A DNA stretch of 64,000 bases. Origin: Parasitella parasitica NRRL 2501. Taxonomy: Eukaryota; Fungi; Mucoromycota. The notes under the pieces were generated by a model that did no database searches, was not told the origin of the DNA, and saw only the letters and a program-made list of their open reading frames with translations. Positions within the stretch are counted from its first letter, which is position 1. Each line of letters opens with the position of its first letter. Of the stretch, positions 50,656 through 63,974 are shown piece after piece. The stretch is taken from positions 105,585-169,584 of the forward strand of contig MU619305.1 in NCBI GenBank assembly GCA_025201805.1, read 5' to 3'. A program made the translations under genes and the position numbers.

Positions 50656-51049
50656 CGTGCTCGTTGTACCGATTGGCCATTGGACCCGCTGAATATCACA
50701 GCTCAGAGCATTTACATCATGTAACCATGTTTCTTGGCGTATTTTTTTTTATTTTTATTTTTTATTTTTTTACGTACAAGACATGCAACAGTCGCTTTGA
50801 TTAGAAACATGTCAAGTTGAAATCTTATAAAAACCACAAAGTTTCTTTATATGTATGCATCCACCCATCATCATTTTATTGATGTAACCGAACGCATGTC
50901 TTAAAATAGACAATTAAACATTTATATCTATTGTGGTGTAAGACTATTAAAAACCCCTCATCAAAAAAAGAGATATATCAGGTTTTGTTAATTTGATTTC
51001 CTCTTCCTTTTTTCTTCTTGTATATCCAACATCTGCAAACCCTTTATAC

Positions 51050-52930
51050 ATGGTCCGCCCAACTTCAATACTTTCTAGTAGTATTGCTATAGTTGGCATT
51101 CTCACATCCACTGCCATTGCGGTTGATCAGCCCACTGCTGATGGCCCTTCAAATCCTCCTGGCGTCACAGGAAATGTACATTATGCAAATTTACTAAATA
51201 ACTCACTGTGGTTCTACGAGGCTCAACGCAGTGGCCGCCTACCGTCAGATAATCGAGTGCCATGGTATGAATGCTAAACAATTCAGCTCGGGTTATGACA
51301 CATCGCTGTTATTTCCCGACACAACAGATAGACAGATGCACTAACATGGACATTCAATTAGGCGTTCGGACTCTGGCTTGCAAGACGGCAGCGACAACAA
51401 AGTCAATCTAACAGGCGGGTATTACGATGCCGGGTAAGTGTGGGCTAATTATAGCTAATTATGGCAAATTATGGCAAATTATGGCTTGCTAACACAACTT
51501 GTCATGAACAGTGACTATCTGAAGTTTTCTTTGCCATTGTCCTACACACTAACAACCATTGCGTGGGGTGCTGCTCAATGGTTTGACGGATATCAGAAGG
51601 CAAACCAAGTTGGCTATCTCAAGGAGATGCTAAAATGGGGCACAGACTGGGTAATGAATGCTCATCCGGACGCCGACACGTTTTACGTCCAAGTAGGCGA
51701 CGGCAATGTTGATAACAACTATTGGGGTAAGCTGGCAATGTCTTGTGCAAGACAGCTATTTTTAACCCGAGTGACACTGTAGGTCCCGATACAGACATTC
51801 CAACGCCTCGCCCTTCCTATCAAGTGAACAGAACGGCGATCGGTACGGACGCTGTCGCCATATCTGCCGCTGCATTGGCTTCAGCCTCTTACCTGTTTCG
51901 GAACAGTTTAAACGACACAGCTTACGCTGACACACTGCTGAACAAAGCATCATCACTCTTTAGCCTGGCCGATACTGCTCAGCCTCGCAATGTCTATGTC
52001 AATGCAGTTCCTGCTATTGCAGACTTCTATGCAACCAACAACTACACCAGCCAGCTCACATTTGCCGCGCTTTGGATGTACAAGGCATCGGGAAACGAGA
52101 CGTACAAAACCATGGCATCCAATTATTTTGATCAGTTCAACCTGGCTAGTGCCCCTATCAGTGTGATGGATTGGAGCGATCAAACAAATGGCGTGTTTGT
52201 GCTCGGTGCTGAGCTCGATTCGAGTAATACAAAGTATGCAACGGCTGCCAAGAAAGTACTGGATGCCATCATCAATGGCAATTCAGGCTCGCCTTGCAGT
52301 TTCACCAACGGCGGCTTATTGTGGTGCGACGGCTACAGTGACGAAAACTCGCTTGTGCCTGCTCAGGATATGGCCTTTTTGGCACTGCTGTACAGTCAAC
52401 TGGATAACTCTAAATCCGGTGCATACACAAAGTTTGCCACCAGTCAAATCGACTACATGCTCGGTAACAATTACATGCTTACGCCCTATGTGTGCGGTAT
52501 CCACATGAACTCTCCTCGTAATCCCCATCATGCCGGCGCATCTGGTGGCACTGACATTGCCAACATTGATTCATCGCCGCCAGAAGAAAAGTACCTGCTG
52601 TACGGTGCTGTTGTAGGTGGGCCTGACAAGGATGACAAATTCTATGATATTCGCGATGATTATGCTCAAACCGAAGTGGCTCTAGACTACAACGCTCCCT
52701 TTCAAGGTTTGGTGGCTCATCAATTGAGCACAGGCGCATCAGATCCTCCCTATGTTACCATCACAACGCCTAGACCTTATGTCAGTCGCACATCCAAACT
52801 CCCTGGATGGCTCATTGCGGTTATCGTTATTTGTGTCATCTTTGTCGTTGCTCTCACAGCTTATATCTGTTGGTGGAAACGTGGATGTGGACTCTGCCGC
52901 AGAAGATACGATAAAGCTGTATCTGCTTGA
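51050..52930 (+). CDS. Glycoside hydrolase family 9 endoglucanase with signal peptide and C-terminal transmembrane helix, 4 exons
   Basis: SLWFYEAQRSGRLP, GGYYDAGDYLKF, QVGDG, NPHHAGAS, GAVVGGP, EVALDYNAPF; TM WLIAVIVICVIFVVALTAYICWW followed by KR. Confidence 0.94.
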
Positions 52931-53618
52931 TGCAAATTTTATTTCCTTTTTACCGTCTTGTATAAATACTTTAAAAACCGTGTACAGTACTATTTTTATC
53001 AGTTTTATTCTAATGCAATTGTAACTTGTGAAATTTATCCTGCGCACTGTTGTAAATCATTGACCATCAACATAGATGAAGCGATGCTTATATTATGACG
53101 AGATTTACCTTGAGAGTGAGACTCCATTTTAATCAATATTTCGTCCAATGTTAAAAACCCCTTGTCGAATTTATAGCTGGTGGTTATTGCATTTGTACTT
53201 ATTGCCTATATCCGGAAGAATACTTTTACAGGCGGTTTGTGTTACCATACGATCTATTTATGAAATCCTCGTTGACTTGCCTCAGCCTCTTAAAATCATG
53301 GATATGAGATTCCACCTGCAAGATGTCACCAATATGCGGCATATTTTCCTTGTAACATTAACACAAACGAATAGTCTCAAATTAAGTTGCGATATTTAGA
53401 AACAAAACATGCAGAGAAAAAACCCCTCTAGGTCAAGTTTTCCCCAGTCTAAAACACCATTTGAACGCAAAGAATGTAATGTCATGTACGTGAATCAATC
53501 ACAACCCGGCTTAAAAATCCTTTGAAACCTTATTCCTTACGTGTATTACGTTGAATAGATTTTTGACATTTTTAAAATAGCAATTTATTACATATTTGAG
53601 CGTGCTTGGATAGTTGGT

Positions 53619-53783
53619 TTAACCGCTCATAACCTCTGGTGGAAGAGACAAGAGCATTGCTATTGCAGCGCCACTTAATACAAACACAATCGCAAAAATC
53701 ACACAGACATTTTTTACGCATTTTTCGTCTCCTTTGAGTTCATATGCTACCATGTTTTGAAATCGTTCTTCATCGTCTGCCAT
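53619..53783 (-). CDS. Single-TM microprotein family member A (54 aa)
   Basis: MADDEERFQNMVAYELKGDEKCVKNVCVIFAIVFVLSGAAIAMLLSLPPEVMSG; paralogous to 54260-54418 and 60416-60586; TATA (CTATAAAA) ~110 nt upstream. Confidence 0.75.
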   Translation of the reverse strand: MADDEERFQNMVAYELKGDEKCVKNVCVIFAIVFVLSGAAIAMLLSLPPEVMSG

Positions 53784-53891
53784 TGTTTCTTGGATTGAGT
53801 ATGAGTGGTAGAATGGGATTATATAGTTTTGTTTGTAAAGTACGAAATTAATAATAAATTGGTGGGCTTTTTTTTTTCTCAAGATCTTCAT

Positions 53892-54720
53892 ATTTTATAG
53901 TTTGTCAAAATCAACTAAAAGAACAAAGAATCTTGAAGAAACATAACGATATACTGACAACATTATGGATCTTTGTTCGAAAGAGCATTACATCACCATT
54001 GCTTTGACCACAGCTGCTAGCCTTCTATTATAAAAGTACTGCTCTCCTGTAGAACAATAAACAACAAAAAGATCGAGATATGCATGCAGAAAAAACTCAA
54101 GTTAAGCTCTTTCCGGCTTAGAGCTACATTTAAACGTTAGATTGCGATGCTTTTGCGTAAATATCTCAAAGTGTTTCTCATACAGAACATGAATTGAAGA
54201 ACTCGTAGTATTGTTTAAAAGCAAAGGTTTATTATCTATATTTAACAGATTTTATTGATTTAAGCACCCAGTACCTCATTTGGGAGAGACAAAAAGATTG
54301 CCCCTGCAGCTGCAGCCATTACAACCAGAATTCCAACAAACAAACAGGCAGTTTTGTCTCTTCTATCATAATATTCATATTTGTTATAAACTTCTTGTTG
54401 TTGATCTTCGTCTGCCATTGCTTCTTGATTCGAATATGAATTTTAAAAAGATAGTTTGAAGACACTGGAGAGATAAATAAAATTACTGTTCAGATCTATC
54501 CGTTTTATAGCTTGTTGAAATTTCAGGCAGAACAAAGGGCCTTCAAAATAACGCAATTGTGCTCACAAGATTTTATTTAAAATCAATTAAACCTTGAGTA
54601 ATGTGCCAGTATTGCTTTGACCACAGTTGCCAACCTTTGGTACTATATCTATGAAGGATAATAATATCCTTTGTAGCATAAACAGTATAATGTATCTAAA
54701 AACTCAAGTTTAAGCTCTTT
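53892..54720 (-). promoter_or_regulatory. Conserved promoter blocks of microprotein genes A and B
   Basis: Forward-strand ttttatag (TATA on -) at 53893/54503; attgctttgaccacag at 53998-54013 and 54611-54626 (identical); aaaaactcaagtt(t)aagctcttt at 54091/54698. Confidence 0.7.
54260..54418 (-). CDS. Single-TM microprotein family member B (52 aa; below ORF-track cutoff)
   Basis: MADEDQQQEVYNKYEYYDRRDKTACLFVGILVVMAAAAGAIFLSLPNEVLGA; same start context, TM and LSLPxEV motif as member A. Confidence 0.75.
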   Translation of the reverse strand: MADEDQQQEVYNKYEYYDRRDKTACLFVGILVVMAAAAGAIFLSLPNEVLGA

Positions 54721-55026
54721 ATTGCTTGGGATTGCAATTTTAAGACAGCAGATCATTACTGCCAATAAATACTATTAGAATTATCTCATTCTCAAGAACG
54801 GCGAGCAGTAAAGATACTATTGACGACAAATCCCCTATTCGTGTTCGATAGCAATTGATATCAATGAGTTTACAAAATAGATATTTATTGTGTTTTTGAC
54901 AGAATTTAAAATAGAGCAGCTTTCTTTATGTATTGTACAATATATGTTGCTCTGGACATGGCAGCTCCAAAGCTAAAATGATTGTATCATAGATATTATA
55001 TTTTTCAGTGGTACCAGCCAGTAACG

Positions 55027-55116
55027 CTACCATTTACCCAAAACCGCCGGGAGTAAGCCAGCCAGCATGAGAAATACAACAACTGCTACGATAACACCAA
55101 GAGTACCTTTTCCCAT
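55027..55116 (-). CDS. Putative diverged single-TM microprotein member C (29 aa)
   Basis: MGKGTLGVIVAVVVFLMLAGLLPAVLGKW; C-terminus aligns with MLLSLPPEVMSG/FLSLPNEVLG; CTATAAAA ~105 nt upstream as in A/B. Confidence 0.5.
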   Translation of the reverse strand: MGKGTLGVIVAVVVFLMLAGLLPAVLGKW

Positions 55117-55523
55117 TTTGATTTTTGCTCGTGTAATTAGAAATTTTCTTGAAAGTAAATTGAGGTAAATGCGATATAATGATTTGGAGAATCGAATACA
55201 AACATTGATTCTTTTTTCTATTTTATAGTTTATTGAAGATTGTGAATAATATTGACAACATCCAAGCCTTTAAATATGGTCAAAGTTAGTAATTTTTGGG
55301 GGGGGGGTAGAAAGAATAGCTTGACAATAATGAGACATTGCTACTAGAGTTTGAGTTCAATTTACAAGAATACTGATTGACGCCTTTCATGAAGCCGGTG
55401 GTTGTGTCTCAGTGCAACATTTTGTTAGTCGGCGACCCATGCTTGGATTGAAGCACCGCGTGCGATTTCTTTGCCAAATACAGTTGCTTTTATCTTATCT
55501 CTTTTTCATCATATAAAAGAAAC

Positions 55524-56586
55524 ATGTCTGCCCGCACGTTTTTAACTTCTGGCAAAAAAATTGTAGCCATAGGCAGAAATTTCAGGTACGACATCACTAG
55601 AGCATCGAAACAAAGCTTTTTTTTTTGAATACATTGTTCGTAGTGAACACGCCAAAGAGCTGGGCAATGCAGTTCCCAAATCACCATTCTTTTTCTTGAA
55701 GCCCACTTCTTCCTATTTGGCTAACGGAGGCACCATTGAAATCCCAAACGGATGTGATGTTCACCACGAAAGTAAGGAAGCTGCCCACATCTGTTGTAGT
55801 ATATGAGCACACTTATATAAGGTACATCGTATTGTAGTTGAATTGGCAGTGGTGATTGGTAAGGAAACTCGTGATTGTCCCGCTTCCAAGGTGATGGACC
55901 ATGTTGCAGGTAAGTTTACTTCGGTTACTGGTGCATGCGCATTATTTGCAAGCATGTATATTTACAATGTGGAAAATCAGGATATGCGCTGGCCATTGAT
56001 TGTACTGCTAGAAATCTTCAGGTAATGCATGCCACATTGGTACAGCCGCACGCAAGTAGTATTTAATAAGGTATTTCTGCTACATGTATAGAACGATGCA
56101 AAGAAAAAGGGCCTACCTTGGAGTGCTTCCAAGGGTTTCGACACGTTTTCACCAATCAGGTATAAAACAGGCAGATCAGGATTGCAATGGATTTGATCCA
56201 GGAACCTTATTCTAGCGGCTATTTGTAGTGAATTTATTCCCAAGGACAGTTTCACTGATACAGCAGACATTGATCTTTGGCTCAAAGTTAATAATACGTT
56301 TTGCCAGCAGGGGAACACAAAGGACATGATATTCAGGTAAGTTGCTATGCTGTGGAGCAACCAAACGGCTAATGGGATGTATAGTGTTCCTTTTTTGATT
56401 GAATACATTTCCTCTATAATGAAACTCGAAGCTGGGGATGTTATTATGACAGGAACCCCATCTGGCGTAGGCCCAATAAAGGCAGGAGATGTTATTACGG
56501 CTGGCATGAAGCCTGGAAAGGCAGAGAAAGACATTGTCTCACTAAAGTTTAACGTTGCAGACAGACAAGGTCTCTTCAAGGCCTAA
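55524..56586 (+). CDS. FAHD1: Fumarylacetoacetate hydrolase-family protein (FAHD1/Fmp41-like), many small exons
   Basis: GKKIVAIGRNF, HAKELGNAVP, FFLKPTSSY, HHE(V)ELAVVIG, GYALAIDCTAR, GLPWSASKGFDTF, GDVIMTGTPSGVG. Confidence 0.93.
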
Positions 56587-56725
56587 TTTAATGTGACGCT
56601 TTAAATAAATTACGGAATCTGGCATGTATCGTGTCTGAAACAGAAACACATGCTCTTTCTTTTTCTCTTCTTCTTCCTCTTCCTCTTCTTAACATATACT
56701 CTCCTGGGAAAACAGCATTCAATAA

Positions 56726-57523
56726 ATGTCGAATCAAGTGGACCCACTCCTGTTTTGGCTGGAGCAGGAATCTGTAAATAGGTAACAAAACATTGCTAAT
56801 TTTGACAAGACAGACAATCTTGTTTTCCACTAACACAAGACGTATCGAATGTGTAGCGATGCTGATATATATCTTCCTGCGGATACCCCAAATGACTATG
56901 CGTTGAGCAAATACAACTATCAATTAGACAAAAAAAAGCACATGAAAAGACATAGAGCAATTGCTAGGCTGAAGGCTTATGAGCTCGAGATGATTACAAA
57001 TAAACGAAAATCGCAGCCTCCAGACGATCCACAGATATCAATCCCTCCATTTGCAAAGCTAGAGACGATCGGAAGCGATGAATTTTTAAATGACCATGTA
57101 AAGGAAATCATTGAAATACTAGCATTGACCGGGAAAGATGGTCAGAGACCTGTTGAAGAAAGTGTCAATATTGCGTCTAATGTTCATCTTGAAGAGCGAG
57201 ATCATAACTATGCCAGATCACTGCAGATACAGGTAAAGACTGTCATCATGGCAACTCAATTAAGGGATACTTAGTCTGTATCATAGAATCTTGCCAGAGT
57301 GGACGAGTATGAAAGAGAATTTGCTAGGATTCGGAATCAAATCTACAATGGGTAAAGATAAGTTGCCGTTCATTTTTAATCAACAAGAAAACAAGCAAAA
57401 AATCCTCAATAAAACGCTCTTCTGATCATCCATCCCGAAAGTACCACTAATCATCGCCTTAGCAGGTATTACCAACAACCAACCATCGTGCAGTCCTTAG
57501 CAACTCGCCGTTTATACCACTAA
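56726..57523 (+). CDS. Hypothetical protein, ~4 exons
   Basis: Continuous spliced frame MSNQVDPLLFWLEQES/TYRMCSDADIYLP...RSLQIQ/NLARVDEYEREFARIRNQIYNG/RYYQQP...LYH* with GT-AG boundaries; no family recognised. Confidence 0.6.
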
Positions 57524-57570
57524 ACTTTGTCTCGAACGCTGTATTTTTTTTTTATTAGTTATTGTACATT

Positions 57571-59198
57571 TTAATGAATACTGGGCTTGCCCTCCACTTT
57601 TTTCTTCAATTCGTGGATCATGTCTTTTCTGTCCAGCACGAATCCCCCGCCTTGATCTGAATCCTTAGATCTCATGTCTTTGATTCTAATTTTGCCATTC
57701 TCAATCTCATCTTTGCCAATAATAACAGCAAACGGGATTTGCTCCTTTTCACAGGCAAGCCATTGCTTCTCAAGTTTGGGCTTGTTTTTAAATGAAAACG
57801 AAGCGTTAATGCCCGCCTCCCAGAGTTCTTGTACAAGCTCCATACGCTCTTTCAAAAGTCCATTGCCCACTGAAATCACATAAACTTGCGTCGCATTGCT
57901 TTTGATACTATTGGCTTTTTGTCGAGACATCAGAATAGAGAATACTCGCTCAACTCCAATCGATACACCGACACAAGGGATTGTTTTCGGCTTGCCCACC
58001 TTATTTGTGCCTGAAAACATCCCCACGAGATTGTCGTAACGTCCTCCTGCCGCAATAGAGCCCACACCCTCTGATTTTTCGGTAACGGCTTCATAGATGA
58101 TGCCAGTGTAATAGTCTAATCCACGAGCCAAGCTCAGGTCCAGCTTGACTCGATCACGCACATTAAATATCTCTAAAAATTCCAACAGCAACCTAATGTC
58201 TGCCAGTCCTTTGGAAGCACCTGCGTGTGCCATCAATTTCTTGTCATTCTGTAGGTAATCTAGCAAACTAGGTGTGTCTTTGTCCATTTGTACGTATCCT
58301 CCAATACGGTCAGCAGCATCTTCTGCCAATCCCTTTTCCTGAACCATCTCCTTCTTCACGTCCTGCCACGGTAGCTTGTCAAGTTTATCCACTGCAGCTG
58401 ATATAGATCTGATCTGCTGTGATGGCACACCGCACACCTCAAAGATACCGTCTAAGATTTGACGATGATTCAGTTTTATGTGGAATGGAATCTTGACGGC
58501 GTCAATTGTGTCGCTTAAGATCTTCAATATCTCGGCATCTGGAATCATGGGATCGTAGGAGCCCGCAATATCGAAATCGCACTGAAAGAATTCCCGTAGT
58601 CGGCCTTTAGTCATGATGGGTTGATCGCGTCTATACACTTTGGCAATTTGGTAGCGCTTCATTTGCTGTGCATCCTTTTGACCTTTCATTGCGAGATATC
58701 TAGCAAAAGGCACTGTGAGATCGTATCTTAATGAGCATGCCTCTCCCCCTTGATCTGCCAAGTCGTATATAAGTTTGCTGTCTTCCCCATATTTTCCGCT
58801 CAGTATATCTCTCATTTCAAAGACGGGCGTGTCGATCGTAACTCCTCCATGACGCTGGAATATCTTTGTAATAGTGTTGAACAGATCTTGTCGCACTGCC
58901 ATCTCATTTTCGTTATAATCTCGAGTTCCCTTGGGTGTCTTTAATTGGAACTGCCGTAATAATCAGTCGATTTCATTTTACTGTTTAAACCAAGGCTGTA
59001 TAGAGCTACTTACGTTGCTTTTCGGCTTTTTCTCTGTTTGTACTTCTATTGATCATGTTAGTCTACCAGAGCGGGGGGAGGGGAGGGGTGAATAGACTAT
59101 GTATGATTACCAGACGCAATGGCCAGGTATCGACATGGCGCATTTATTAAGATCTTTTTGGGCTGGTATCGTAATAAATTTATCGAAGTTTTGAACAT
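57571..59198 (-). CDS. HTS1: Histidyl-tRNA synthetase (eukaryotic type) with N-terminal mitochondrial-type presequence, 3 exons
   Basis: [69 protein letters not shown]; start [15 protein letters not shown]. Confidence 0.95.
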
Positions 59199-59447
59199 TT
59201 TCTAAAATTGCTGTCTTGAATTTTTACGTTGAAAAACTAAGGGGTGGCAATCAGCAGGGATGGGTCTTCCAAAAGATGTCAATTTGCGGCGCTTTATTCC
59301 ATGATCCATGGTGAATAGTCCTACGCCAAATTTTAAGAGCTTTATGTACTTCTCAACAAAGAGCTTTGACATTGCTTTATGAGCGTCCTTTGTCTCTATA
59401 ATGTCAATAAGCTATAAATACCGTAAATAAATTCATGNNNNNNNNNN

Positions 59448-59489
<42 letters not shown>

Positions 59490-59524
59490 ACTTATTTTGA
59501 CCTTCTACAAATTTTTTTAATCAA

Positions 59525-59647
59525 ATGCCTGAATGCGAAAAATTCCAACGTATAGCTAGTGGTGTTATAGGTCTAATGGCCGGTCTAGGTGTGATTTTGT
59601 TTGCGATCATGGACGGAACTTCTGCCGATAATTTACCAGAGGACTAA
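59525..59647 (+). CDS. Putative single-TM microprotein D (40 aa), possible distant family member
   Basis: MPECEKFQRIASGVIGLMAGLGVILFAIMDGTSADNLPED; upstream tcaataagctataaata and aaagagctt resemble the family promoter (N-gap 59438-59447 intervenes). Confidence 0.45.
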   Translation: MPECEKFQRIASGVIGLMAGLGVILFAIMDGTSADNLPED

Positions 59648-60415
59648 TACTGTATATCTTTCCAAGCACAAGACTCTCTAAATTTGTGAAAAAAAAAAAA
59701 TCAATAAAAACCCGAGTAACTTTGAACCAACAAACCCAAAGAGATAACTATAACTCTCTCGATAGCTTAATGTTTTCTCAAATTTTTTTCTTCTTGGTCC
59801 ATGTTTATAGCAATCATCAGCATATTGGAGTTTTGGCAGAGGATGGATATGTTTAAGCAATAAGAATCTGAAAGCTAAGATATTTTTGATCTATCAAAAT
59901 TGCTTGTGGTGCTCATCCAACAATTTGAGAACAAACAAGATTTACTATTTATTCCATTAGAAAACAATGCGTCTGTTCGCTAAGAAACGTTCTTTCAGTT
60001 ACAAAAGATTTTGCTTTGCATTTTATTATCTAAATAAATATTTTTTTAAAAAAAAAAAAGTGTAAGGAAGAAATGTCTAATCAAGGGTTTTGAACGATAT
60101 TATGCATAGCATTAAAATGTCACTTTAAATTGTCAAGCGCCTGGACTTTACAGGATATTGTTCCAGCTCGAGAAATACAGCATTATTATCCTTCGTACGT
60201 ATAGTATCTAAGGTTAATAACTGTTGTGGTCAACGCAATGACGACATATTGCTCAAATTTTAGCTTTATTTCCACATTCTCCATAATGTTGTCAGCACAG
60301 ATTTAAAATACTCTTAAGCTATAAATACACAGATCCGTGAAGCATTCTATCTCAAACTAATCTCTTTCTAAAAATCGCATTATAGAGTCTCACTATAAAT
60401 ACTATACTCGAAAAG

Positions 60416-60586
60416 ATGGCAGAAGAAGAAAGCAATCAATCTGCCACTGGTACTAATACTACAACAAGTTATCAAGGAGAAGGTTGCGGATGTCATGAAC
60501 GTATCGGGATAGTGCTCTGTATTTTCTGTGTGTTAACCGGAATTGTGGCAGCGATATTATTAGATCTTCCATCTGAGGTATGGTAG
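60416..60586 (+). CDS. Single-TM microprotein family member E (56 aa; below ORF-track cutoff)
   Basis: MAEEESNQSATGTNTTTSYQGEGCGCHERIGIVLCIFCVLTGIVAAILLDLPSEVW; LxLPxEV motif; upstream tgtggtcaacgcaat (60225-60239), ccataatgttgtcag (60281-60295) and ctataaata (60319-60327) match A's promoter in reverse complement. Confidence 0.75.
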   Translation: MAEEESNQSATGTNTTTSYQGEGCGCHERIGIVLCIFCVLTGIVAAILLDLPSEVW

Positions 60587-61047
60587 TAGAATCGTAATCA
60601 AATCCATCAACAATAAAAATCAACCTTTTAAACTGGACTTATTCCAATACATGATGGATGACTATATACAAAGGCTGTATTCAGTTTATATTCAGGGCTC
60701 ACTATTTCTGGGTAATTGTTGCTCTTCCTATAAAATGATGTCAGCGAAACAAATAAACTTGTCAAAAGTTTGAGTCATAGAAGCCTTATTGTTGTCGACT
60801 GATTCATTTAATTATGAAAAAGGTGGGTTTGCAGAAATAAAGTGTTTGGAGCAATTGTATAACAATCCTTGGAGTATAAAAATGTTGGAGTCAATGAAGC
60901 AAACGTTTAATTATTCATAATACTAAAGAGACCCTCTCTTAAATTAATTATACAGTTTTTGTTGATTTCATTGTCTCACTGATAAATTTCAGTGTATAAA
61001 AGTCGAAATGACATTTGTAACCTTGTTTTTTTTCCATTAACGCTAAA

Positions 61048-61860
61048 ATGACACTATTTATTACAGAAACGAACTTGACCTCAGACACAGAGCAGCTGGG
61101 GGATTTCATGGAATTTCATATCGCTTTTTCCATGATGTCTGTACCATGTAGGATCCATCGTCCTGAAGTCATAAATTATGCTCTTCAAAATCGACTACGT
61201 AAAGGTGATACGGTGTTACTACAGGGTGTTTACATGTCTGCTGTAAAACCGGGCGACGTGCAGTACATCAGCATCAATTACATCGAGTTGCAAAATATTC
61301 ATTCGAGAAAGAAACGAAAGCTCCAGCAAATGCAGCAAGAGCTATTGACAAACGATGCAATGTCAATAGTGTCATCGTCGCCTTCGCAGCAAAATGGAAG
61401 TTCTGGCAGTTCCACTCCATCCCAAAGTGAAAACACTGGAATCCGTGTTTTACCGCCTTATTACAATGAGAAACAGAAAGCAGAATATACCTTTATTGAA
61501 ATCACAGGTTGTTTCCGAGAATACTTTTTCATGTTGTATGGACAGGCATCCTATGTCTGTGAAATATACATACACGGCATGCACAGCTTGGAAGAGAAGT
61601 ATAAGGCGCATGCAGAAATGACTGAACTGATTCACCAGCATTTGGGCGACATACTCACGTTGTACGTTACAATCACAAATGATCACACTGAAAAAGGTCA
61701 GGTACGGAAATCTGATGTAGTCAAATTTGTGAATTCAGTTAAAGGGTTGATGACCGAAACTCTTGGACGATTTACGAAATTGAGTAACAGTTTACCCGAA
61801 CTTATCAGCATCGACGCTAGAATCCCTTTACCATCGTTTATTTACAATGAATACCTTTGA
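61048..61860 (+). CDS. Hypothetical intronless protein (270 aa)
   Basis: Long open frame with good ATG context (aaaATG), TATA-like gtataaaa ~50 nt upstream; no family recognised. Confidence 0.6.
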   Translation: MTLFITETNLTSDTEQLGDFMEFHIAFSMMSVPCRIHRPEVINYALQNRLRKGDTVLLQGVYMSAVKPGDVQYISINYIELQNIHSRKKRKLQQMQQELLTNDAMSIVSSSPSQQNGSSGSSTPSQSENTGIRVLPPYYNEKQKAEYTFIEITGCFREYFFMLYGQASYVCEIYIHGMHSLEEKYKAHAEMTELIHQHLGDILTLYVTITNDHTEKGQVRKSDVVKFVNSVKGLMTETLGRFTKLSNSLPELISIDARIPLPSFIYNEYL

Positions 61861-61995
61861 AGATCAAAGTGGCTTATTTCTGGCAANNNNNNNNNNAAAA
61901 AAAAAAAAAAAAAATGAAATAAAATTAAAAATAATAATGCAGGTTTTTGCTGTTGTTATTATTGTTTCCTATCTAATTGAAATCAAATCTATATT

Positions 61996-63974
61996 ATGAC
62001 AACAACTGTTCCTGCTCATGCCGGTTCCTGGCATTTATTAGAAACACCACTAAGTGAATCCATGTAAGTGTATATAGGCTGCGATTGTACGGTACAGAAA
62101 AACTAAATTCAGCTCCAAGTCTATCTACATTGGATAACATGGGCTTCGATACAATGACTCCTGTTCAATCAGGCGCTATTCCACTTTTTATGAAAAACAA
62201 AGATGTTGTAGTCGAAGCAGTTACAGGTTCTGGCAAAACATTGTCGTTTGTAATTCCAATTCTCGAGAAACTATTGCGCAGAGATGAGCCCCTAAAAAAC
62301 CATGAAATCGGAGCTGTCATTATTACACCTACCCGAGAGCTTGCTCAACAAATTCATTCAGTATTCCAGATTTTTGTTCAAGACCATGAGCGAGCTGATG
62401 ATATCAACTTGGGCCTCTATATTGGTGGGTCGACTTCATTAGCAGAAGACATTTCTTCATTCAAAAAGGAACATCCTCGTATCCTGATTGGAACACCAGG
62501 TCGATTAGAAGAGTTGCTCACCAAGTCTGGGCAATTAGTGAACACCAAGGAATTGGAAGTTCTGGTTATGGATGAGGCTGACAGATTATTGGATATGGGG
62601 TTTTCCAAGCAACTAAGCAGTATCATTGCTCAATTACCCAAACAACGTCGTACAGGTCTTTTTTCTGCAACAATGACAGATGCAATTTCAGAGCTTGTTC
62701 GCGCCGGTCTTCGCAACCCTGTTCGCATTGTCGTCAAGGTAGAGGACCTTGCCAACAAGGGCGTTGTTCAACGAACACCTGCTACGCTAGACATTGATTA
62801 TCTCGTATGCGATGCGGATCAGAAATTATTGCAGGCAGCTCGTATCTTGGAAACAGAAATAGCAGACGACGAAGGCTCCCGTAAATTCATCATCTATTTT
62901 GCCACCTGCGCCATGGTCGACTACTTTTACAAAATTCTTTGTCGTTTGCCAAAACTAAAGTCCTTTTCTTTCCATTCACTTCATGGACAGATGGATACCA
63001 AGCGTAGATCAGCTACATACACATCATTCACAGAACTATCACCAGCAGTCCCTGCAGTCTTACTTTGTACTGATGTTGCATCGCGTGGACTGGACATTTC
63101 AGATTTAGATTACGTTATCCAAATTGACCCTCCTCAAGACCCTAAAGTCTTTTCTCATCGATGTGGTCGTGCGGGTCGTGCTGGGCGAAAGGGCCGTGCC
63201 ACTGTATTATTGGTGCGTGGTCGTGAAGAAGTGTATATCGATTTCCTCAAATTACGGAAAATTCCTATACAACGAAGATCTTACATTATGCCCGATTTGA
63301 CGATGTTTGATAATAGCATCGCTGCAGGAGATGATGAAAATGATGATAAAGCTACGTCTGTAGAAGTCAAGGACGAAGGTGTTTCTGAATTTATCCAACA
63401 AATGCGCTCCATCGTCAAGACTGACCGAGATATCAGCGATCGTGCAATCAAAGCTTTTGTATCTTGGGCCAGAGCTTATTCTAAGCATGAAGCCAGTTAC
63501 ATTTTCCGCATAAAAGATTTGGATCTAAGTCGATTGGCCATGGGATTTGGTCTTTTGAAGTTACCTAAAATGCCTGAACTGAAAGCGCAGAACGATAAAA
63601 GTCAATTTGTGGAAGAGGAAATCGATTGGGATTCGTTTAAATACACAGACAAAATGAGAGAGGCTAAACGCTTGAGAGAATTGAAAGAATATCAAGAGAA
63701 ACAGGCTGCTTCCAAACCTCAACTGCAAAAGAAAAAGATGAATTCAGCTTGGTCTGAAAAGGCAGATGCCAAAGAGAGAAAAATTGTGCGTAAAGAAAAA
63801 AAGCAAGCCAAGAAGGAATTTCTAAAGAAGGAAGCCCAGGCAGAAATTGAAAACAAAAAGAGACAATTAGAAGAAGAAAAGGAAGATTGGGAGGATTTTG
63901 CTAAAGAAGAGAGGATGTACAAAAAAACCAAGAAGGGCAAACTAGATAAAAGCGCATTTGATAAGATGTTTTAA
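61996..63974 (+). CDS. SPB4: DEAD-box RNA helicase Spb4/DDX55 (60S biogenesis), short first exon + long second exon
   Basis: MTPVQ (Q motif), VEAVTGSGKT, PTRELA, DEAD, SAT, TDVASRGLD, HRCGRAGR, AFVSWARAYSKH..IF, FGLLKLPKMPEL. Confidence 0.95.

Follow-up and report, generated by a model that had tools for sequence, protein, structure and literature searches.

Do short open reading frames (ORFs) of little more than 50 codons, lying between conserved fungal genes, represent genes of their own, and what kind of protein would they encode? We addressed this question for three such ORFs, called A, B and E, in a 64,000-nucleotide stretch of contig MU619305.1 (GenBank assembly GCA_025201805.1, positions 105,585 to 169,584 of the forward strand), hereafter referred to as the window. 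An earlier note on this DNA had proposed that they encode a family of microproteins with a single transmembrane segment. On the evidence presented here we consider A, B and E to be three paralogous genes that are transcribed independently, lack introns and encode proteins of a family not described before, and we assign this reading a probability of roughly 0.75. That the genes are real and code for protein is very probable. So far the family is known only from the species of the window and from Parasitella parasitica.

Three paralogous ORFs share a C-terminal motif

All three ORFs are present exactly as the earlier note had described them. Gene A occupies 53619..53783 on the minus strand (54 aa plus stop), gene B 54260..54418 on the minus strand (52 aa plus stop) and gene E 60416..60586 on the plus strand (56 aa plus stop). 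A hidden Markov model (HMM) of the family detects them with E-values of 3.5e-29, 4.4e-27 and 4.7e-27, respectively. Pairwise similarity between A, B and E reaches z values of 6-12 against composition-matched shuffles, and a profile built from A, B and E matches these three places only in the whole 32.8 Mb assembly. Judged by sequence, the three are clearly paralogous, and this genome contains no further member of the family.

In a six-frame translation of the 64 kb window the string LPxEV is confined to A, B and E, where it stands 1-3 codons ahead of the stop, giving three occurrences in all. The motif LxLPxEV put forward in the earlier note is seen in these three proteins; its Glu is not invariant, since Gly is found at this position in the Parasitella orthologue A’ and Asp in E’. 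The six sequences available from the window and from Parasitella define the refined motif L-[SD]-L-P-x-[EDG]-V. Invariant positions in their alignment are M1, V35, A42, L47, P48 and V51 in the numbering of A. A and B are spaced by ~615–635 nt, suggesting that they arose by tandem duplication. The paralogue dS values of 0.43 versus 0.9–1.3 suggest that E is an older, inverted copy.

The proposed frame is the only one that is open in all three loci. Antisense frames of A, B and E contain stops and are not shared among the loci. The chance that ATG, open frame and stop would all be kept under neutral drift, given the divergence observed between the paralogues, is 0.006 from A to B and 0.001 from A to E, and among simulated sequences that are still open, the hydrophobicity of the helix is retained with P values of 0.014 and <0.001. 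The earlier note had read protein-level selection from the comparison of the paralogues. Their ratio of nonsynonymous to synonymous substitution rates (dN/dS) of about 0.6–1.3 does not bear out this argument, but the selection itself is real, as indicated by the retention of ORF and helix and above all by the Parasitella orthologues. G+C content at the first codon position (GC1) of the microprotein ORFs amounts to 0.50–0.60. Log-odds of codon usage favored the ORF frame in five of five ORFs (A, B, E and two further micro-ORFs, C and D, described below); this result is partly trivial owing to stops in the other frames and was not taken as evidence.

Orthologues in Parasitella are under purifying selection

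We compared the locus with the Parasitella parasitica interval L028, which was taken as coming from a different genus than the window species. The histidyl-tRNA synthetase (HisRS) encoded next to the microprotein genes is 88–92% identical to that of many Mucor species and of Parasitella, which places the genome in the Mucoraceae. Gene order in the Parasitella interval is that of the window: DEAD helicase, 270-aa gene, gap, HisRS, X, FAH, gap, GH9. Both unannotated gaps hold intact orthologues of A to E at matching positions and in matching orientations. A’ (L028:15342-15506) shares 65% amino acid identity with A at a dN/dS of 0.25, B’ (L028:14721-14885) 56% with B at a dN/dS of 0.27 and with one 6-nt indel, and E’ (L028:7665-7835) 73% with E at a dN/dS of 0.22. 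The family HMM recognizes A’, B’ and E’ with E-values of 1e-20 to 1e-22.

Over the 230 concatenated codons of the five ORFs, differences between window and Parasitella are distributed over the three codon positions as 42/24/78 (chi-square p 1.4e-7), at a dN of 0.164 and a dS of 0.612. For HisRS dS is 0.668 and dN/dS 0.074. All indels between the ORFs of the window and those of Parasitella comprise whole codons, and the probability of finding all five ORFs intact under neutral drift is 2.5e-6, even when the divergence actually seen, which is constrained, is used. When the intergenic intervals were compared by BLASTN, the ORFs and short promoter pieces stood out as conserved islands, the rest being unalignable. 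Taken together, these comparisons support protein-level purifying selection on the family. As contrary signs, the earlier note had named a dN/dS near 1 and frameshifts in orthologous loci: between the orthologues dN/dS is not near 1, and no frameshifts are present. We also saw no sign of a transposable element or of a larger spliced gene, which the same note had listed.

Each gene is part of a cassette with its own promoter

Repeat search and alignment showed that the homology of A, B and E reaches past the ORFs, each gene forming a cassette of ~620 nt. The upstream block of the cassette contains an invariant TGTGGTCA core, located at -191 to -229 from the ATG and embedded in an imperfect palindrome GCAAT-N9/10-ATTGC. 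A TATA box, CTATAAA[A/T], lies at -92 to -117 from the ATG and is accompanied by AGATC at a fixed distance of 12–13 nt beyond it. The start codons of A, B and E have A at -3 and G at +4, a Kozak-like context, and AATAAA is found 3–29 nt past the stop in the three window genes.

The promoter and 5’ region of A (53784..54062, minus strand) carries the TGTGGTCA block core at 53998-54012, ATGTTGTCAG at 53954-53963, the TR-box-like TTCTTTGTTC at 53921-53930 and CTATAAAA at 53893-53900; its AATAAA (53584..53589, minus strand) is located 29 nt past the stop. For B, the corresponding region (54419..54668, minus strand) has the block core at 54611-54625 and CTATAAAA at 54503-54510, with AATAAA (54251..54256, minus strand) following 3 nt past the stop and a second copy at 54228-54233. 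For E (60180..60415, plus strand) the block core is found at 60225-60239, ATGTTGTCAG at 60286-60295 and CTATAAAT at 60319-60326, without a CTTTGTT box; AATAAA (60612..60617, plus strand) lies 25 nt past the stop.

Alignment of the window with Parasitella showed that TGTGGTCA is invariant and a box ATGTTG[T/C]CAG is kept in all six A/B/E upstream regions. The TATA box is likewise kept in six of six, with the invariant columns TAT.AAA and one gapped position in E; the base preceding TATAAA is C in five loci and G in Parasitella B’. Since the TATA box is conserved throughout, we take it for a genuine element of the sense strand, which at A, as described below, serves only incidentally as an antisense splice acceptor. 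A further box, [T/C]TCTTTGTT[C/T], contains CTTTGTT of the high mobility group (HMG)/TR-box type and is present in five of the six loci, the window’s E being the one that misses it. In S. pombe, the HMG-box factor Ste11 binds a TR box of the sequence TTCTTTGTTY (PMC3416868). For the genes studied here the CTTTGTT box may offer a lead to a regulator of the HMG type.

The promoter boxes are specific to the A/B/E loci when window and genome are searched. The exact 15-mer of the block occurs genome-wide at these loci only, and sites with one mismatch elsewhere in the genome had no cassette behind any of them. We also considered the block as an RNA structure, which proved weak on both strands and showed no covariation, and therefore prefer a palindromic DNA site. 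A short antisense peptide over the block (..IALTT..) was rejected as well, as it is interrupted by a stop in B, ends differently in A and is inconsistent among the loci. At E, a 32-aa antisense ORF (60186-60284, minus strand) covers the promoter block. At A and B the corresponding frames are cut short or contain a stop, and the ORF at E probably just reflects the conservation of the DNA element. Expression of A, B and E would probably be conditional and driven by the family-specific promoter.

Predicted architecture points to tail-anchored membrane proteins

The proteins begin with an acidic segment of ~25 residues carrying a net charge of -3 to -4. These first 25 residues are acidic and polar and do not resemble a signal peptide. 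In the six-sequence alignment Cys residues are positioned at the membrane boundary, where the helix is entered. A single hydrophobic helix of ~22 residues follows at about positions 26–47 of 54, with Kyte-Doolittle maxima over 19 residues of 2.7–3.0. The helices are rich in Gly, Ala and Val and carry a conserved small-xxx-small face, [GA]-x-x-x-A, formed by [GA]38 and A42. They end at L-[SD]-L-P-x-[EDG]-V with Pro as a cap, followed by an acidic tail. In all six proteins the C-terminal tail comprises 5–9 residues; the tail is net acidic and lacks basic residues. AlphaFold predicted one helix from residue 3 to 46, with the highest confidence at 21–40, stopping just before L47-P48; the mean predicted local distance difference test (pLDDT) score was 71.

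Tail-anchored proteins have a single transmembrane helix and a tail of less than ~30 residues, so that the helix leaves the ribosome only after termination. By hydropathy, AlphaFold model and tail length, the family falls within these limits of size and position. The single-pass, tail-anchored-like architecture suggested in the earlier note is thus supported by the helix at ~26–47 of 54 and the short tail. With such a short tail the helix would exit the ribosome only after termination, so that insertion would be post-translational, i.e. tail-anchored. Lys and Arg precede the helix and Glu and Asp follow it, a charge pattern which predicts a cytosolic N-terminus and a C-terminus on the outside. 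A tail-anchored protein with its N-terminus in the cytosol is accordingly the likely form predicted from these features. A very hydrophobic helix combined with an acidic tail favors the endoplasmic reticulum (ER) route according to the targeting rules for tail-anchored proteins. The high hydrophobicity and non-basic tail of A, B and E would therefore favor the ER and secretory pathway (GET/EMC route) over mitochondria and peroxisomes, and by these rules we consider an ER/secretory location somewhat more probable than not.

As to function, our best guess is a small regulatory or accessory subunit. Its small-xxx-small face and its juxtamembrane LP motif would pack against another membrane protein as partner, and the acidic tail would act on the cytosolic side. 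We put forward such a partner-regulating or accessory role by helix packing tentatively.

Comparison with known small membrane proteins

Phospholamban, sarcolipin and DWORF of animals as well as Pmp1 and Pmp2 of the yeast ATPase Pma1 are tail-anchored micropeptides that regulate P-type ATPases. Like A, B and E they have 30–55 residues, a helix near the C-terminus and a short tail, and are encoded by small genes that are often intronless and unannotated. Their cytosolic N-terminal segment modulates a partner; the resemblance to A, B and E is one in kind only. The window proteins differ from them in having no Pfam match at E<=10, a strongly acidic N-terminus and the L-[SD]-L-P-x-[EDG]-V cap. Sec61-beta/Sbh1, RAMP4/Ysy6 and Tom5/6/7 are accessory subunits of membrane complexes, ancient and pan-eukaryotic, and belong to recognizable Pfam families. 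They have the small size of A, B and E, the tail-anchored topology predicted for these and the accessory role that these may play, whereas the window proteins have no Pfam match and a very narrow distribution.

A different parallel is provided by S. cerevisiae YBR196C-A and other ‘TM-first’ emerging ORFs, which comprise ~50 codons, are half transmembrane helix, integrate into the ER, evolve fast and are of intergenic origin (Vakirlis et al. 2020, PMC7005711). A, B and E resemble them as lineage-restricted ORFs of ~50 codons, half of which is helix, located between conserved genes. In contrast to ‘TM-first’ ORFs, they are fixed in two genera, are under purifying selection and possess a dedicated conserved promoter. 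Nor are they markedly T-rich, with a T content of 0.28–0.29 versus 0.24–0.27 in four ordinary genes. No non-genic ancestral sequence that would document a ‘TM-first’ origin was identified in the syntenic intervals of three Mucor species.

Searches for relatives outside the two loci

In line with the earlier note, which had recognized no known family, we found no relative in Pfam, in two very large protein searches, in the ESM Atlas or in metagenomes. Scanning A to E against Pfam-A with hmmscan returned no family at E<=10, and Rfam gave one sub-threshold chance match in 52500-61500, outside the loci. Profile searches with three and then six sequences in 5.8 billion proteins retrieved the window’s own protein A only, and an exhaustive HMM search of 1.84 billion representatives yielded the own protein and two long repetitive false matches. 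Look-alikes in the ESM Atlas scored <=0.84, within the range of chance. Metagenome contigs contained nothing, whether searched by protein or by the promoter-block pattern, and an exact-protein look-up of A returned no record.

The corresponding loci of Pilaira, Helicostylum and Gilbertella differ in synteny and contain no members. JGI and Logan contigs with a 92% identical HisRS were M. plumbeus-like, again without members. A match of the HMM in M. circinelloides (E 0.007) aligned over the linker only and was dismissed as spurious.

Transcripts over loci A and B

One public run covers the region. It represents RNA, since its contigs skip GT..AG introns of neighboring genes. Loci A and B were read against this single sample, whose contigs drop rare forms. 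A spliced antisense RNA covers A (53559..54078, plus strand) at a depth of ~20, with exons 53559-53834 and 53901-54078 and a GT..AG intron on the plus strand at 53835-53900. The contig is 480 nt long, and the 66 nt that it skips read CT..AC on the ORF strand. The antisense exons were translated separately.

The contig of the neighboring GH9 gene has a depth of ~3,500 and ends at 53485, the stop of the coding sequence being at 52930. The uncovered stretch 53486-53558 between the GH9 contig and the antisense contig begins with GT and ends with AG, and coverage of the antisense RNA amounts to ~0.6% of that of the GH9 contig. This RNA is probably an alternatively spliced read-through tail of the GH9 mRNA, accounting for ~0.6% of it and apparently crossing two more introns. 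The reverse complement of A’s TATA box (TTTTATAG) would serve as a cryptic acceptor. Read-through from GH9 in antisense to A could cause transcriptional interference or provide a substrate for RNA interference. A dedicated, conserved antisense RNA gene, as in a type I toxin-antitoxin-like pair, was not found, antisense RNA being seen at A only; neither B nor E conserves the antisense donor. The GH9 transcript itself runs ~555 nt past its stop and has a spliced 3’ region (intron 53116-53176), pieces of which are conserved in Parasitella.

Weighing of the alternatives

Several results weigh against A, B and E being independently transcribed genes under selection. The one RNA run showed no sense transcript of A or B: coverage of locus B is zero, and no contig covers 53835-53900, where the TATA-driven sense mRNA of A is expected to start. 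Paralogue dN/dS is near 1, amounting to 1.3 for A-B, 0.6 for A-E and 0.85 for B-E. G+C content at third codon positions (GC3) of the microprotein ORFs, 0.27–0.33, is near that of intergenic DNA, and the orthologue dN/dS of ~0.25 reflects weaker constraint than the value of 0.07 for HisRS. The family is also narrow, being absent from the syntenic 21 kb of M. circinelloides, M. plumbeus and M. lusitanicus; these intervals are unalignable and hold other micro-ORFs, and the absence may reflect loss, relocation or replacement. Finally, topology, targeting and function as proposed here derive from general rules and not from data of this organism.

Part of these results would also fit young, translated proto-genes without a selected function that drift towards loss, as suggested by the narrow distribution, a GC3 near the intergenic level and the paralogue dN/dS. 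Proto-genes of this kind would not be expected to remain intact at all three loci in two genera at a dS of ~0.6 and a dN/dS of ~0.25, nor to keep a dedicated promoter, which makes this reading very unlikely. The ORFs might instead be first exons of larger spliced genes, the E-V codons GAG|GTW serving as donor and the early stop being intronic, and GAG|GTATGG (E), GAG|GTACTG (B) and GAG|GTTATG (A) do resemble donors used in the genome. We consider this highly improbable: no conserved open frame was found downstream in any frame at the three loci, a stop is reached within 1–4 codons of the motif in all six genes, and AATAAA follows within 30 nt of the stop in the three window genes. The convergent GH9 transcript is reached within ~130 nt past A and A’s promoter lies behind B, and conservation with Parasitella ends ~25–70 nt past the stop. 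The antisense RNA, together with the TATA box, whose opposite strand makes a good 3’ splice site at all loci, raises the question whether conservation here concerns an RNA or cis-regulatory locus, such as the antisense transcript over A, with the ORFs being incidental. Such an explanation is extremely improbable. Orthologues differ in step with the codon phase of the ORFs (42/24/78) and indels comprise whole codons, whereas the antisense frames are interrupted and unshared and the antisense donor is unconserved in B and E. The antisense RNA, at ~0.6% of GH9 depth and starting right after a GT..AG gap, fits read-through splicing, and neither an Rfam match nor a conserved structure was found.

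Another alternative leaves the genes as they are and concerns their location. The mitochondrial outer membrane commonly contains small tail-anchored subunits, and as the tail-anchored architecture alone does not fix the organelle, the proteins might be anchored there or in peroxisomes. An acidic tail without basic residues and a long, very hydrophobic helix (2.7–3.0) favor the ER by published rules, and a mitochondrial or peroxisomal location is rather unlikely. We therefore retain the reading of A, B and E as three protein-coding genes of a new family whose products are predicted to be tail-anchored.

Micro-ORFs C and D

The earlier note had added two weaker members, C (55027..55116, minus strand, 29 aa) and D (59525..59647, plus strand, 40 aa). 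Both are real conserved ORFs, but their membership in the family is not borne out by HMM, motif or promoter. Both escape the family HMM at E<=10, pairwise similarity to A, B and E is marginal (best for E-C, z 3.7), and the TGTGGTCA and ATGTTGYCAG boxes of the cassette are absent near both. C has no motif, showing LLPAVLG, and D lacks LPxEV and ends in NLPED; these resemblances are suggestive only. Their Parasitella counterparts C’ (L028:13801-13893; dN/dS 0.24) and D’ (L028:9279-9401; dN/dS 0.22) are closer than those of A, B and E, with 87% and 82% amino acid identity and a dN/dS of ~0.23. We treat C and D as separate conserved and constrained genes in the same array. A conserved island extends around C (54873-55238), and an RNA contig of low depth (55054-55398) covers part of C together with sequence upstream of it.

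Of the four N runs in the window, only the assembly gap at 59438..59447 lies within the region of the microprotein genes. It is intergenic, 78 nt upstream of D’s ATG and outside all five ORFs. One colinear alignment of window and Parasitella leads from the HisRS 5’ region across the gap into D (~747 nt without Ns versus 733 nt), which supports the scaffold join and indicates that little sequence is missing. A run of ~38 A (59448-59485) directly follows the gap between HisRS and D and probably caused it.

Gene neighborhood and the corresponding interval in Mucor

The gene order GH9, FAH, X, HisRS, 270-aa gene and DEAD helicase (50993-63974) is shared by the window and Parasitella. Gene X (56849-57274, plus strand), between FAH and HisRS, has no Pfam match; its product comprises 175–239 aa in the Mucor, Parasitella, Pilaira and Helicostylum loci. 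The 270-aa gene (61048-61860, plus strand) beside the DEAD-box helicase likewise has no Pfam match and encodes 270 aa in Parasitella, too. The genes of M. circinelloides, M. plumbeus and M. lusitanicus are arranged as GH9(+), gap, HisRS(+), X(-), FAH(-); GH9 and HisRS are on the same strand in the three species, and FAH is followed by a GH15 glucoamylase. The rearranged FAH-X-HisRS segment of the window is flanked by inverted microprotein cassettes (B/A versus E). A single-inversion model with respect to M. circinelloides was insufficient, since the right-hand neighbors differ too.

In the three Mucor species the gap between GH9 and HisRS contains 1–6 unannotated single-helix ORFs of 30–32 aa, all on the same strand, which form a family of their own. 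They are located on the minus strand at L022:7785-7883 and L022:9542-9634, at L027:9235-9345, at L030:759-869 and, as six ORFs, between 5029 and 9468 of L029. Their orthologue dN/dS of 0.08–0.33 indicates purifying selection, so that they, too, look like real microprotein genes. A review of the fungal ‘hidden genome’ does not mention such Mucor microproteins. An HMM of this family does not score A, B and E (P 0.09–0.5); C and D are marginal at 0.03 and 0.02, respectively. Like A, B and E, the Mucor ORFs lie beside HisRS and GH9 in a tandem array on one strand, encode a helix rich in Gly, Ala, Val, Ile and Leu, are unannotated and are constrained. Unlike them, they are shorter and have neither the acidic linker nor the LP motif.

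It is conceivable, if doubtful, that the DNA flanking HisRS in the Mucoraceae is a long-lived nursery of single-helix microprotein families which are mutually unrecognizable and differ from lineage to lineage, all of them unannotated and under purifying selection: A, B and E with C and D in the window species and Parasitella, and 2–6 copies of the 30–32-aa family in the M. circinelloides group. Such a nursery would possibly be tied to the adjacent membrane-anchored GH9, whose read-through runs antisense over A, or to sexual or parasitic development via the HMG/TR-box-type element. If true, the interval would offer a natural and datable series of microprotein birth, duplication, both tandem and inverted, and replacement.

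Implications

Microproteins are systematically overlooked by annotation. The small family described here is absent from the genome’s own protein set, except for A, from the annotation of Parasitella and from public protein libraries. Five conserved micro-ORFs are found inside 7 kb, three of which form a new family with its own conserved promoter, and another small family forms parallel arrays in the corresponding interval of pathogenic Mucor species. The locus represents a clean case, validated by comparative genomics, from an early-diverging fungal lineage in which small membrane proteins have hardly been studied. This implies that a class of membrane components is missing from the gene catalogues of Mucorales. 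The locus would provide a tractable system for studying the role, origin and turnover of microproteins as well as the factor that reads the family-specific promoter.

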